The translations under genes were made by a program, and so were the position numbers. DNA of 60,855 nt, the filler included, from Dugesia japonica (taxonomy: Eukaryota), in NCBI GenBank assembly GCA_001938525.1. It is 6 parts of 6 records of this genome, joined end to end, with 100 filler letters (N's around TTAATTAATTAA, not from the genome) between each part and the next. Parts side by side here need not be neighbours in the genome. Positions count along the whole stretch, not along the records: positions 11,921 to 20,708 come from MQRL01589119.1; 5 more parts are not named here. One strand, 5' to 3'. Under the pieces are notes generated by a model that had not been told where the DNA came from, ran no database searches, and saw only the letters and a list, made by a program, of their open reading frames with translations. This document shows positions 12,568-21,099 of this stretch, piece by piece (position 1 is the first letter of the stretch; every line of letters starts with the position of its first letter).

Positions 12568-13731
12568 TCAGGTCGATTAAAAAAAGGCATTTCATGAAAC
12601 TCATATTTTTACGTAAAAGAAAATATTTTTGTGATTATTTCCTTTTCATTTATTGTACTACTTATAAGTATTGCATAAAGGTCATATTTACTTATTTAAT
12701 TATTAATTTTAAAAATTTTCTTTAGGAATAAAAGAATAAAAGGATACAATTCATGTACGTTTACACACAATATAGAAAGAAAGGAATGTAAGTGAGAGTG
12801 TTCTATTTATTAATGAAATGATGGGCCAAGATATAATATCAGCAAGTATGGTGCAAAAGTGGTTCCAGCAATTTAAAAAAGGACGGAAAGGTCCTGAGCA
12901 AAAACAAGATTCTGAAAGACATATAACTTTGGATCGACAAGCTCTACCAGAATGTCTTGCTCCTGAACCAATATCATCCAGCTCAAAAATTGCCGCAGGC
13001 ATTTGCTCTCAAAAAACTGTATTGAGGTGACTCTATTCAAGAGGGCAAAAGCCACAAAAATAACTATGTATCCTGCACAATTTGACGATTTACCAAAAGA
13101 CTAAGTGTGTTAGGTGATGTCAGCTTTGTGTTCACTATGATCCAAACGACTCCTAGACCATAAATCCACGGAAAGAAGAGGTTACTCTCGGTTTTTGGTC
13201 AGCAACTGGAATCATTCACTGGTAACTTATTCCTTCTGGAAAACCCACGTCAGCAGATATCCTCCAAAAACAACTGCATGGTTTTGAAGCTAATTTGCAG
13301 AAACACAGGGCCAAAGGAAGCTTCAAAGAAAAGTTAGACTTCAGATGAACAATGCTTCTCCGCATACTGCTACTGCAAAGAAAACATACATCAAGGACGA
13401 GCTTGAAACATCATTCACAACACACCTTTTTTTCCAACCTTGCTCTAAGTGATATTTACCTTTTTTGGTCACTTAAAGATTTTATGAGGCAAGAGACTTG
13501 AGGAAAAGTGTGATGAGGGTGATATTCTTCAATTTACCATCGCCAAGTTCTTCGAGAAGTCTCTGGTGGACTATTTCAATAGAAATAAAGAAGCTCCCAG
13601 AAAAATGGGGACTTGTAGTAAACAATAATGGAGAATTTATCTTGGATTGATTGAATATATTTAAAATATAAGTTATTAGATTTGTCTTTTATTCGTTAAT
13701 TAAAATGCGCCCTTTTTATGAATTGACCTGA
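12568..13731 (+). mobile_element. Near full-length degenerate mariner with both TIRs
   Basis: Left TCAGGTCGATTAAAAAAAGGCATTT; right (reverse complement) TCAGGTCAATTCATAAAAAGGGCGCATTT. Internal MVQKWFQQFKKG, FWSATGIIHW, MNNASPHTA, LALSDIYLFWSL, EKWGLVVNNNGEFILD*. Confidence 0.9.
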
Positions 13732-13869: not shown

Positions 13870-14580
13870 ATCACTCAAATCGATGAAAATCTTTCAAAAA
13901 TTGAATAATGGTCAATGAAATCGTTGAAAACTATTTGAAATATGGCAAAAACTTTTCAAAAATTAAATGGAAATCAATAGAAATTCTCAAAAATTATATA
14001 AAAGTAAATACATTTGTCAAAAATTTGCCTGAAGTCGATAAAAAGTTTCAGTAGGTAGATTGGTCAGCATAACCCCATCATTTTGATTGGTAAATTCTGC
14101 TCCACCCTTTTCCCCCTCAGATCAATAATTATTGACTATTGATTTTTTGATCTGATTGATTATGGATTTTTAAAGTGATTATTGATGTTCAAGTTCGTTT
14201 TCGAGTGCTTTTCTTTTTAAATTTTTTTTGGCGCCAAATTTAAAATTTTTTTCTTTTCTTCTTTTTGTGTATTCTATCTTTTTTTATTTTTTGTAAGGTT
14301 TCGATGTTGTATTTCAATAAAGTTTTTAAGTCTGTATCTAATGACATAGATAACTTTTACAAAAATGTTCCTGTTGGTGACGCGTTTTCGGATTTCAGGT
14401 TCCAGTGTTGCGGTTTTTTGTCGGATTTTTTTGGATGAAAATTACTGTATGTCAATAAAGGTTTTTAAAGATTCGACAGAAGTCAATGGACGTTTTAATA
14501 AATTTACTAGAAATCAAGAAAATCTTTCAAAAATTTACTATATGTTAATGAAATTTTTCAAAGATTCAAATCAGGAAAAT
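13870..14580. repeat. Degenerate ~31-bp minisatellite (units like GAAATCAATAGAAATTTTCAAAAATT) at 13870-14045 and 14445-14580
   Basis: Recurrent a(a/g)tc(a/g)at...tttcaaaaatt units on both sides of the 14050 terminus. Confidence 0.55.
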
Positions 14581-14850: not shown

Positions 14851-15371
14851 ATGAATTTAGTATATATACCGAAAATTCCGCATTATGCAAACGATTATTA
14901 AATTGACTCAATAAAATTCTAATAAAATAAACATTTAATAAGATCTAATCATCGTTGCTTTGAACATCACTCTTCCAAGTCTTTTCCTCCTCTGAAAGAG
15001 AATTATATAAATAATTTGCTAAAAATAAAGGTTTTATTGTTTTTATAAAAAATTCTTTTTTTCAGTGTAAAATATTTTATTGGTTTATTTATTTGCAATT
15101 TTTTATTTTTCCCATAATACTAATATGTCATAATGTTAACTTTGTAATACTTACAANNNNNNNNNNACATTATAGGTAATGACTCATATTTTTACCGATT
15201 TACGGATATTTTCATTTTTCTGTAATTTTCATACAGAAACACAAAATGCGCGAATAATCAAAATTTTTAACAAATTCATTATGAATCGTTTCAATATTAA
15301 AAATCATATTCAAGTGAAAAGTTGCATCAAATATCATAAGATTCATTTTTAAAATATTCTTTTGAATGAAA

Positions 15372-15802
15372 TCAAAGATTTCTATTGGCGACTCCAATCA
15401 AAAAATAGTAAATCATGTTAACAATTAAAGTTCCAGTTCTATATGATTCAATAATGGGATTAAACTCAGAAATATCGAACATTCTGACATTGTTACAAAG
15501 ACCAGCTTGATAACAAATAGACAGAGCTTCTTCTGAAGTTAGTCCAATCGACGACGGACAACTAACACCAGGACAATCACTAGACTGTATACTATCCAAG
15601 TCAAATGAAATGAAAACATTGTCATATTTTTTATTATTTATAATTTCAACAAATGTTTCCACAGTAGTACGTTTCATTGTAGAATTTTCAAGTAAAGAAC
15701 CATGCAGGTCCTTCAACCAAATGATTTTCCCACCTTTCTTTTGAACGTATTCTACATGCTCAGTAGAACACTGACTTCCTTGGCTAGCAAATTCAATGAA
15801 AT
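15372..15802 (-). CDS. Arginase/ureohydrolase-fold enzyme, formiminoglutamase (HutG)-like; terminal exon
   Basis: Acceptor ttag at 15806-15803, then open frame FIEFASQGSQCSTEHVEYVQKKGGKIIWLKDL...VFISFDLDSIQSSDCPGVSCPSSIGLTSEEA...FDISEFNPIIESYRT...*. Contains the DxD metal motif, PGVSxP and ExNP. Confidence 0.85.
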
Positions 15803-16029
15803 CTAAGGTCTAAATGTATTTAATTAATTACTTGCTCAAACAACGTATTAAAAAGAGTTTAATACAATATAACAATACTAATATAATAATATGTTATATT
15901 TAAATGATTTAAAGGTTGTTTTAATATTGTTGTTATTTTCAGTTTGTTTCAAATTTTGTATAAAAGCTATAAATTTGGAGTATGCTAATAAATGATTTGG
16001 TCATAAGCCCAGCTGAGTTTTATGTATTG

Positions 16030-16745
16030 GACCAATTAACGTATGGGAAAAACCTTATTCTCAGAAACGAGATTACCATTAAACTTTTCAACGGAAATCA
16101 CAAGTAACTGCTGGAAACAAGTATTCGGAAGTTTGTATGATGAAAAGCATACCAAGTGAAGGAAAACTTATAGATACATGCACGACAATACCAGAGAAGG
16201 ATCAGAACTTACTGATTAATGACAATGATTTCATCGCATGGTTTGACAATGGTAAATGGGCCNNNNNNNNNNNNNNNNNNNNNNNNNNNNCTATTGGTTG
16301 AAAATATTGACACAATTACCCGATTGCTTCTGGTGACTTGCAGTTATTCAACCGCGAAATACAAAGCTGAACATAAGATGGAATATTGGTTGAATGCGAT
16401 TATGAGAAACACGATGAAGTCAGGAACATGATGCCCATCGTGAGTGTACGACAAGTCAAGGGCAGTAAAACGAAAGTGCGGCCTTTACTTGATTACATGT
16501 TCTTAAATGATCAAATTGTTAGTTACCCACATTGGTCACTTTCTAGATGTCAAGAAAGACTCGGATAATGGCATATGGTGGGGCCTGGTTGTACTTTTAT
16601 GGAATTCTACAAGGCTTACTTAAAAATTAAAATCGACAAAGATTTGTAAACATACCAAGTTGTACAGTTTGGTGATAGGCTATATTTTATGACTGGGCTT
16701 TGCTTTGGTTTGAAAATTCCACTAAAGGTTATGTCAAAGTTATTT
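16030..16745 (+). mobile_element. Decayed LTR-retrotransposon reverse transcriptase fragment
   Basis: KVRPLLDYMFLN, EFYKAYLKIKIDKDL*TYQVV, MTGLCFGLKIPLKVM. Confidence 0.75.
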
Positions 16746-17424
16746 ATCAAAAGGGCACTTTATTATTGAGTTTCACCAGAACAATATTAATACCTTAAAA
16801 TCATTGACGCCTAAAGTGTCAGAGTTCAATGTTTACATTAAGTTCTGAAATGTGATATCAAACTGACTCACTGCCTTACTAACCTTCTTCCAAAAATTTT
16901 AGTGGTGTATTAATTTTACGTGTGTTTAGTGGGACAATAAAAATATATAACAGATGTGCATATTTTTACGTAATAGTGGTGTATGAAATTTACGTATATT
17001 TAGCGGGAACGATTGGATTATGTAACTTTAAATCGTACTTTTTGTGTGTGGCCAGTTCAATTTTTTAATTTATTTGTATTTAATTTTCGCGCTCAACTTT
17101 TGGCGAAAAATTTTAATTTTAAATTTAATTTTAATTTAAATTACATTTCATCACGCAAAATTCTAAAACAACATATTAAATTTCTAAGTCAAATATAGTA
17201 TTCATTATTGAAAATAAACACTTCAACATGGAAAATAATCAATTTGTCATGAAAAATTATAGTTTCAACACAAAACATAGACACTTAATCATATAATACA
17301 GGTATCATCATGGTAAATATACGAGTCATCATATAAATATTAGATACACTACATATGAAGTATAGAACGCGTCATTCATAATACAAATTTCAAAATAAAA
17401 CTTAAAATTCAAAAGATTTTAAGA

Positions 17425-17650
17425 AAAGAATTTATCAGTTAAAATTTAATAAGAATCAAATTTTATCAGCTTAAAATTAATACAAAATTAAAATTGATCA
17501 ATTTGAAATTAATATGAATCAATATTTAATAGCTTGAAATTAATATGAATCAAAATTTATCAGTTTAAATTTAATATGAATTTAATTTGATATGCTTAAA
17601 AGTAATACGAATCAAAATTAAACAGCTTAAAATTATTATAAATTAAAATT
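17425..17650. repeat. ~31-bp AT-rich minisatellite, about 7 copies
   Basis: Units like TTTATCAGCTTAAAATTAATATGAATCAAAA. Confidence 0.75.
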
Positions 17651-18719
17651 TAAAATTGATTTTTGTTAAATCATATTAATTAACATATCTCAAACAATTA
17701 TTTATTATTAAATAATTTTGTTTAAAAATATTAATTAAATATGACCAGAACAGAATAATTTTATTATTTCTTCATTATTTTGCCATTTTAACAATATCAA
17801 GTAAGATTTTTTATTTAATTTGCTATATTATTAATTTTAGATTATTTAGGAAAACTTATTATGATTTATTTATTATGATCAATGCTATGAAAGCTTATTT
17901 TGATCAATGTTATTATAAAATTTGATAAATTATGAAAATAAGTAATGATTTATTTAAATTAAACGGTAATGATTTTTTTAAATTGTAATAACTTTCGTAT
18001 TAATTTTATTTTAAGTTAACAATTTTTAAAATTCATAATTTCTTTTCAGTTAATAAATTGATCTTCAGATGATAATTGTATACGTTATGAATTCTTAATG
18101 ATATGATTAAAGTTATTGTAAATATGGTAACGTTTTACGAATTGTGATCATTGTTATGAACTTTGACAATAAATAAGGATTTATTTTTATTTAAATTAAA
18201 TGGTAATAATTTTTATTTAAATGGTAATGTTTTTCTTAAATGATTTATCCTAATGAATTTTTAGTAGTGCTTTTCTTTAATGATAATAAGTAATGATTTT
18301 CAGTAATGATTTAATTTAAAGATTTATTTAATAACAGTTGACTTTGAATGATTTACAATTTTGCGGCTTTGTGTCCAGCCAATATTGACGTTGACGACTA
18401 ACTGTTTTTATCTTATAAAGGTTATGCAGTTGTAGCAATGCATATTTGAGACCGAATGTGAACAGTTGGAAGCATTACTGCCATAGATGCATATACTGTA
18501 TTCAAGCTTAGTCTAGTTTAAACTACACAAGCTGATCAATAAGTTCAATTATGAACGGACTGGATTGGATGCTAACGAACCTTGATGGATTCGCTCCATC
18601 GGAATATACATATCGGAGGAAATAATGTAATGGTATGGAATTCAAGCAAAACTGTTAATGAAATAAAGTATGAAAATAATTTATAATGATATTAATAATT
18701 TTACTAAGACATACAAATT

Positions 18720-19635
18720 AGTAGATGGATAGTAGCACATAACACCACCTACATTTAGTGACCCCACCCCCCCCGGCCCCTTTACGTAATCGGATTATTA
18801 CATAAGTGGTTTTGAATTTTTCTAATGTAAATAGGCGGTGGCACACAGTAGTTGATAAATATTTTATGAAATTGCAGAGTAGTCGATAAAAATATTTTGA
18901 AATTGCACAGTAGTCGNNNNNNNNNNNNNNNNNNNNNNNNNNNNNNNNNNNNNNNNNNNNNNNNNNNNNNNNNNNNNNNNNNNNNNNNNNNNNNNNNNNN
19001 NNNNNNNNNNNNNNNNNNNNNNNNNNNNNNNNNNNNNNNNNNNNNNNNNNNNNNNGAAATTACACAGTAGTCACAAAATATTTTATAAAATTGCACAGTA
19101 GTTGATAAAATTTTTCTGAAATTGTACAGAAGTATTTAAACATTTTATAAAATTTACATGAAGTATGCAAGATGAATGAATATTTTAATGCATTACATAT
19201 AAAGTTTGTGTCCATTACGAGAGTGAGAATAGTGCAATATGAATAGAACTCACTCGACATTCTAATATTACTCAAGTAAATGAATAAATGATAATTAATG
19301 ATTCTAATACTGACAAGTTTCATAACCCACTAATGTATTCATATAATTACTTGGCAAAAATTGGTTTCAAATGTTAATATTATAGGAAAGAATATATAAA
19401 CATACACAATACTCGTTACCAAGAGCTTTATCAACACAATACTCAGTACCATTAAGTCTTAACATATATGATACTCACTAACAGCTATATAAACACAATA
19501 CTCGCAACCAACAAGTCTTAATACATAATGCTCGCCACCATTAAGTCTTAACATATACGATACTCGCTATCAACTACTATTAACCTATACAATTCTCACT
19601 ATAATCAAGTGTTAACATAGATAATACTCACTANN
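18720..19635 (+). mobile_element. Polinton-like terminus followed by two different ~29-30-bp tandem arrays
   Basis: AGTAGATGGATAGTAGCAC nearly matches AGTAGATAGATAGTGGCAC at 53961; C-run at 18762-18780. Arrays AAATTGCACAGTAGTCGATAAAAATATTTT (18840-19160) and ACACAATACTCGCTACCAACAAGTCTTA (19400-19633). Confidence 0.55.
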
Positions 19636-21099
19636 NNNNNNNNNNNNNNNNNNNNNNNNNNNNNNNNNNNNNNNNNNNNNNNNNNNNNNNNNNNNNNNNN
19701 NNNNNNNNNNNNNNNNNNNNNNNNNNNNNNNNNNNNNNNNNNNNNNNNNNNNNNNNNNNNNNNNNNNNNNNNNNNNNNNNNNNNNNNNNNNNNNNNNNNN
19801 NNNNNNNNNNNNNNNNNNNNNNNNNNNNNNNNNNNNNNNNNNNNNNNNNNNNNAACTATTAACCGGTTAATTGTTCAAATTTTTTCACCTTAATATAGAA
19901 AATTCCTTTGATAATATATTTCTAATGCGTTTATTCACCTATTAATCATCACCTTGTAATATAAATTTATTCTTTCATTAATTAAAATTCTAACCAATTA
20001 TTCATGAACCTAATATTTATCTTTGAAAATAATTAATTAATTAAATTTTCAAAGNNNNNNNNNNNNNNNNNNNNNNNNNNNNNNNNNNNNNNNNNNNNNN
20101 NNNNNNNNNNNNNNNNNNNNNNNNNNNNNNNNNNNNNNNNNNNNNNNNNNNNNNNNNNNNNNNNNNNNNNNNNNNNNNNNNNNNNNNNNNNNNNNNNNNN
20201 NNNNNNNNNNNNNNNNNNNNNNNNNNNNNNNNNNNNNNNNNNNNNNNNNNNNNNNNNNNNNNNNNNNNNNGTATTATAAGTATTTTAGAATTCATTTTAA
20301 AATATATTTTGTTTTAATATTATGTGTACAATGTGTATATTTTTTTTTCAAATTTTTTCGAAGTAAGTAAGTGTTTTATTTTAAAATAAATTTTTTGATT
20401 TAAATATTTTAGAACAAATGAAAAGAAAATATGTTAGAAGATAGAGAAATAAAGAATTTCGATATGAAAAATTGATAAAATATAAAGATTTACCTATCAT
20501 AATGTCTTGGGAAAATGATCTATCAGAGAATTAAACCTGAAAAATGAAACCACCTGTATCCATTCTTCGGTAAGAAACCCAAGAGTTAGTTGATATAGTT
20601 AAATCTATTGTCAATAAAAAACATGAAAAATACTATTGAAAATGAGAATTGTGAATAAGGAATGATGAGGTTAGTTTATTTATAATTATTATTCTTTTAA
20701 TTATTATTNNNNNNNNNNNNNNNNNNNNNNNNNNNNNNNNNNNNNNNNNNNNTTAATTAATTAANNNNNNNNNNNNNNNNNNNNNNNNNNNNNNNNNNNN
20801 NNNNNNNNAGTTATTTAAATTTTCTCTAAATAAAAATTCATAAATCATAGGAAATTAGTTTCAATAATTCTTATTTGTAAACAATTATGATTAATTTCTT
20901 CAAAAGAAATATAAATTGTTTTTTCTTTATATTATTAATTTAGTCCTTTTGTTTCGATCTTTAATCTTGATATTAAAACAAAACTATTATTATAATTTTT
21001 ACTTCAATATATAAATTACATTTACATTGGTAAAGTTCTCAATAAATAACAACACATAACAATATATAAATAAACACTAATAAATTTCACGCATCTGCA

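Follow-up and report, generated by a model that had tools for sequence, protein, structure and literature searches.

The segment 15809–15375 on the minus strand of the window (the whole stretch of Dugesia japonica DNA analysed, 60,855 nucleotides) is most probably the last exon of an expressed and maintained host gene that belongs to the T. cruzi-type formiminoglutamase clade and was inherited vertically rather than acquired recently. The terminal coding exon (15375..15809, minus strand) comprises 145 codons and encodes the C-terminal half of a formiminoglutamase-like enzyme of the arginase fold. Translation gives a single open frame across 15812–15372 on the minus strand, and the TGA stop codon (15372..15374, minus strand) ends the protein at the same place as in its relatives. 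At the opposite boundary, the AG of the 3' splice site of a phase-0 intron (15810..15811, minus strand) follows a T-rich run and reads tttag at 15814–15810, hence the exon starts at 15809; the upper limit given earlier, 15802, falls on a second TTAG, 7 nt into the exon. The G+C content is 33% in the exon and 28% in the surrounding 8.8-kb piece of the window. In DNA of 28–33% G+C, chance would hardly produce an open frame of 145 codons. The sequence-only reading had described an intact terminal exon with a splice acceptor and host-like AT content, and both descriptions hold. The motifs it quoted, EFASQGSQCS, SFDLDSIQSSDCPGVSCP and SEFNPxxExYR, are all found in the exon translation, the last of them as SEFNPIIESYR.

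Family assignment, conservation and predicted reaction

The exon matches the Pfam Arginase profile PF00491 with an E-value of 3.4e-15 and 56.7 bits (cut-off 22). The match spans profile positions 166–278 of 280, so that the exon corresponds to the C-terminal half of the fold. Among the NCBIfam models, TIGR01227 (hutG) is the best (E 7.3e-12, 45.1 bits), and agmatinase (35.6 bits) and rocF (29.5 bits) both score below it. In a search of the PDB, the best solved relative is the formiminoglutamase of Trypanosoma cruzi (4mxr, 2a0m), which is approximately 50% identical over residues 4–143 (E 8.5e-31). The second-best solved structure is an arginase with an E-value of 4e-08, agmatinases range from 6e-06 to 0.06, and human arginase-1 reaches 0.014, animal arginases and agmatinases being at least 20 orders of magnitude worse than the T. 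cruzi enzyme. A trypanosomatid-type formiminoglutamase, distinct from animal arginase and agmatinase, had been recognized from the motifs, and the contrast between 8.5e-31 for T. cruzi and 0.014 for human arginase-1 bears this out. Identity as a metazoan arginase or agmatinase is ruled out by the weaker rocF and agmatinase scores and by E-values of 4e-08 or above for arginases in the PDB. A feature search of the ESM Atlas returned generic bacterial 'arginase family' clusters only.

Full-length members of the clade from Hydra, Clonorchis, T. grayi, Nitrospina and Capsaspora, together with P0021, the closest full-length relative of the window gene, score 131–168 bits on TIGR01227. The equivalog cut-off of this model, 229.15 bits, is missed by all full-length members tested, including the trypanosome one. 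At the same time, every clade member tested scores highest with hutG, by approximately 40 to 80 bits over agmatinase. The full-length members fall below the 229-bit cut-off, and the clade formed by the eukaryotic and Nitrospina proteins is a subfamily of its own, sister to bacterial HutG and distinct from the TIGR01227 equivalog.

When 48 clade members are aligned, 31 columns within the exon show conservation of 90% or higher, and the window sequence retains every one, including D70, D72, PGVS and D112/S114/E115/N117/P118/E121. The C-terminal pattern specific to the clade (EF..QG.QC...H, W, F.SFD.D, PGVS and D.SE.NP..E) is present in the exon. The columns of D70 and D72 in SFDLD and of E115 in SEFNP are 98–100% conserved in the 48 relatives. 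From established knowledge of the fold, we take D70 and D72 to be the equivalents of the arginase D-x-D ligands D232 and D234. Both coding differences found in other individuals, at positions 15708 and 15753, are synonymous. Compared with the same exon of L004, the nearest relative (70% protein identity), dN is 0.20 and dS is saturated. The conserved columns, the synonymous variants and the dN of 0.20 favour selective maintenance of the gene.

The product would be a binuclear-manganese ureohydrolase of approximately 320 residues belonging to the eukaryotic T. cruzi-type formiminoglutamase clade. The exon would supply the C-terminal half of the arginase fold, with the two Asp ligands of SFDLD, the PGVSCP loop and the SEFNP..E..R segment, and the N-terminal half would lie on upstream exons beyond the piece; the N-terminal metal ligands (H/N, D-x-H-x-D) would be located there, where relatives carry GGGNDQS and DAHLDVR. 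We infer the substrate and the pathway role of the predicted enzyme from homology: two Mn2+ ions would be bound, a bridging hydroxide would attack N-formimino-L-glutamate to yield L-glutamate and formamide, and the reaction would serve as the folate-independent final step of histidine breakdown. We propose, tentatively, that in the Hydra/fluke clade, this animal included, histidine breakdown ends, or can end, in this way, with formiminoglutamate hydrolysed to glutamate and formamide without the use of folate. The route would be an old eukaryotic one that a few animal phyla retained and that vertebrates, arthropods and most other groups lost.

It is unlikely, though worth weighing, that the same gene carries out other chemistry, acting on a different amidino, guanidino or formimino compound, and that its name is simply carried over from T. 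cruzi. The T. cruzi enzyme is the sole clade member assayed, for formiminoglutamate hydrolysis (PMC12203737), and the position of every tested member below the curated hutG cut-off speaks for the same alternative. However, the exon is approximately 50% identical to that assayed enzyme, the clade-invariant positions are identical in trypanosomes, Hydra, flukes and the window, and the lead of hutG over agmatinase extends to all members tested.

Transcripts, the last intron and its repeats

The DNA of the exon, taken with 1.1 kb around it, is present in 20 runs from nine studies of a single organism. Four runs were compared with the window at 14900–20708, namely one of DNA (X1) and three that are RNA-like (X10, X9 and X13, from three studies). 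The X1 contig is continuous across 14900–16177 at approximately 11x. The RNA-like contigs, 1065–1151 nt long, cover only the interval from 15247 or 15293 to 15813 and have almost no depth on unique DNA outside the exon and the 3' untranslated region. Their lower ends lie at 15247 (X10) and 15293 (X13), below which RNA depth drops; transcript contig coverage thus delimits a 3' untranslated region of approximately 80–125 nt (15247..15371, minus strand). Past the acceptor, the RNA-like contigs run on for 544–688 nt that do not match the window. Since they leave the genome at the acceptor while the X1 DNA contig continues, the splice site is confirmed. The first 30 letters of the loose end encode ..FRQMLDTNIN.., matching SPFRQMLETNTNY of P0021, in which this peptide directly precedes SLDFVEF. 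The RNA-like contigs are spliced mRNA, and their upstream part could accommodate the 180 or so codons that are missing.

The X1 contig differs from the window by a 14-nt insertion behind 15222 and by substitutions at 15227, 15230, 15812, 15816 and 15872; these are differences between haplotypes, located in the intron and the 3' flank. The exon variants of X1 are also found in the RNA contigs.

As aligned, the contigs match the window up to 15813, 4 nt beyond the splice site (15810–15813, minus-strand TTAG), and the junction reads ..NIN-TAG-TLDF.., with TAG in frame. If this TAG were real, the gene would be transcribed but broken, its mRNA either encoding the N-terminal half only or needing read-through, which we consider improbable. 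X10, X9 and X13 do align through 15810–15813 and yield the in-frame TAG. Against this, each of the three has exactly one unplaced mismatch, close to one end of its alignment, and of these ends only 15813 is common to all three. A mismatch within the junction codon would turn it into a sense codon in eight of nine cases, and P0021 has Tyr (TAY) there. Moreover, the 145 codons downstream are intact, all 31 conserved positions are retained and the variants are synonymous. The likeliest reading has the upstream exon ending in TTAY, with the aligner overrunning into the TTAG of the acceptor. The in-frame TAG combined with a TGA stop also raised a ciliate-type code, in which TAA and TAG encode Gln. 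This was rejected because all five Gln codons of the exon are CAA or CAG, and because the genome contains satellites of approximately 1e5 summed depth and a fluke shares the long spliceosomal intron of the gene.

No upstream exon was found in 15810–20708 by stop-to-stop frames, tblastn of six full-length relatives against the piece returned the terminal exon only, and the window does not contain the 30 nt with which the loose end of the transcripts begins. With the upstream exon absent from the visible piece, the last intron must be at least 4.9 kb long (15812..20708, minus strand), extending beyond the end of the piece; it is filled with satellites of approximately 31 nt and masked repeats. 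As to the upstream exons, whose recovery from RNA data had been suggested earlier, the first 30 letters of the loose end encode a conserved upstream peptide of the family; the exons themselves lie outside the piece.

Tandem repeats with a period of approximately 31 nt are located at 17429–17642, 18844–19154, 19418–19621 and 13885–14022, and the masked runs of N sit within such arrays. At these arrays the summed contig depth in X1 is 2e5–4e5, versus 11–20 on unique DNA. A short frame on the plus strand (12818–13030) matches the Mos1/mariner HTH_48 domain with an E-value of 1.9e-4 and 21.9 bits, the cut-off being 24.1, and would at best be a decayed mariner remnant. Thus, of the earlier picture of an exon embedded among host transposons, high-copy satellites of approximately 31 nt stand, and the transposons are reduced to one decayed, sub-cut-off mariner HTH piece.

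Distribution and descent in animals

In an exhaustive search of representative sequences, 719 relatives were detected, of which 34 had E < 1e-30. Animal copies are present in Hydra vulgaris (XP_065667727.1), Clonorchis sinensis, Opisthorchis viverrini, Calicophoron daubneyi, Adineta vaga and A. ricciae, that is, in at least Cnidaria, Platyhelminthes and Rotifera. NCBI names the Hydra vulgaris protein 'formimidoylglutamase' and that of Clonorchis sinensis 'formiminoglutamase'. Capsaspora, a close relative of animals, also has a family member. Fungal members come from chytrids and Paraphysoderma, and protist members from Trypanosoma, Acanthamoeba, Balamuthia, Acrasis, Carpediemonas, Blepharisma, Planoprotostelium and Arcella. 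Bacterial members are those of Nitrospina and its relatives. In addition, environmental metagenomes often contain related sequences.

Several members of the family attract attention in their own right. The proteins of Chytriomyces hyalinus (P0312) and Arcella intermedia (P0321) pair with 100/100 support and short branches, an odd fungus–amoeba pairing that suggests either a contaminated data set or a transfer. In Adineta vaga, a gene for a 166-residue PP-binding (carrier-protein-like) protein lies approximately 100 nt downstream of the formiminoglutamase-like gene. The same pair occurs on two metagenome/Logan contigs. The loci in question, that of A. vaga included, are L007:3001-4586, L001:9444-11045 and L003:54-1089. 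Either the two genes form a conserved pair or these contigs are rotifer DNA. The Nitrospina and Nitrospinaceae copies (P0333, P0331, P0241, P0297, P0306) are approximately 49% identical to the Hydra protein and lie basal to the eukaryote clade, apart from ordinary bacterial HutG. This position may reflect an old transfer between Nitrospinae and eukaryotes, in either direction.

A tree of 52 rows was built with IQ-TREE under LG+C20+F+G4 and rooted with more distant ureohydrolases (supports are UFBoot/SH-aLRT). In this tree, the window forms a trio with P0001 and P0021 (98/96), which is sister to three trematodes (91/80), and the trio, the trematodes and the Hydra group make up a clade of 17 rows (99/92). 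All named members of this clade are animals (Hydra and the three trematodes), and many of its rows come from metagenomes or transcriptomes. Bdelloid rotifers are placed outside this clade, at a position without resolution; a constraint uniting every animal row, the bdelloids among them, could not be rejected (p-AU 0.31, for a group chosen after the tree was seen). The eukaryote clade is separated from Nitrospinae with 96/99. Phylogeny within the arginase family had been put forward as a check of the sequence-only reading, and it places the exon inside the eukaryotic T. cruzi-type clade (96/99) and, within that, in the animal subclade (99/92). In both the window and L004 (208|209), T/S-L-D-F-I/V-E-F comes directly after a phase-0 intron, with which the last intron of Clonorchis agrees in place and phase.

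The animal clade (99/92) and the intron whose place and phase are shared with Clonorchis favour patchy vertical retention with many losses over recent transfer. On this evidence, the gene would be an old eukaryotic one that passed vertically within animals and was lost in many animal lineages. The tree and the intron also suggest that the host is a flatworm or closely allied to one. Recent horizontal transfer from a protist or bacterium is highly improbable. It might be suspected from the patchy presence of the family in animals and its frequency in protists, from the identity of approximately 49% between the Nitrospina copies and the Hydra protein, and from the intronless Hydra copy. Yet the window groups with trematodes and Hydra, with no protist or bacterium among them, its spliceosomal intron of at least 4.9 kb agrees in place and phase with that of Clonorchis, and the composition of the exon (33% G+C) is host-like. 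Thus, of the two origins considered earlier, transfer and patchy retention, it is retention that finds support. A contaminant contig from a protist or symbiont of the animal is scarcely credible, even though environmental metagenomes frequently yield related sequences, since the exon is found in 20 runs of nine studies at single-copy depth (approximately 11–20x, the same as adjoining unique DNA) and is physically joined to satellites of 1e5 summed depth in the same DNA run. The exon thus belongs to the host genome, as had been stated, being found in nine studies of one organism, spliced, and sharing its intron with a fluke; the repeat-rich genome and the tree point to an animal as this host.

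The animal adds one more name to the short list of those in which a hydrolytic formiminoglutamase has been kept, either in place of the folate-dependent FTCD step or in parallel with it. It makes a modest point on metabolic gene loss in animals and leads to the prediction that formamide is an end product of histidine catabolism. Our literature search found no paper on a formiminoglutamase of this clade in any animal. Nevertheless, sequence databases already contain this kind of gene, the clade and its animal members, and knowledge of the family is unchanged because the Hydra and Clonorchis copies already bear names in NCBI. The sequence-only reading was right about the family. The surprise it attached to an animal formiminoglutamase is smaller than first assumed because orthologues in Cnidaria, Platyhelminthes and Rotifera exist and have been named. 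One of the conditions set for refuting that reading, a wide occurrence of orthologues among animals, applies in part.

Comparison with known systems

Bacterial HutG (TIGR01227) provides the best curated model for the exon, and sequence similarity suggests that the reaction would be the same. The relatives of the clade have GGGNDQS in the N-terminal half and form a subfamily separate from bacterial HutG. Animal arginase-1, arginase-2 and agmatinase have the PF00491 fold family in common with the exon but are otherwise distant.

The formiminoglutamase of T. cruzi (4mxr, 4myf, 2a0m; EC 3.5.3.8) resembles the exon in SFD.D, the PGVSCP loop and SE.NP..E.YR. Residue numbers for the T. cruzi enzyme are N114, D228/D230 and C242, checked against the offset of an 8-residue tag in the PDB alignment; the Cys of the PGVSCP loop of the exon aligns with the T. 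cruzi Cys, C242. The two proteins differ in the loop after WLKDL, which is 9–10 residues longer in the Dugesia exon. They also differ in their place in the tree, the T. cruzi gene being on another branch with Carpediemonas and the Dugesia exon in the animal subclade.

Closer comparisons come from animals. The sister group consists of Clonorchis sinensis, Opisthorchis viverrini and Calicophoron daubneyi (P0026, P0214, P0235), whose proteins owe their names to annotation. The Clonorchis formiminoglutamase is 53% identical over the exon, and its last intron, in phase 0, lies four codons before IEF; the gene has three exons over 9 kb. The trematode homologues differ in their long branch and in other loop lengths. 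In Adineta vaga, the intron is 4 nt off and in phase 1. The Hydra vulgaris formimidoylglutamase (P0168) is 54% identical over the exon, has the same conserved positions and belongs to the same clade (99/92), whereas its gene (L005:3001-3924) is a single exon without introns, in contrast to the last intron of at least 4.9 kb in the window gene.
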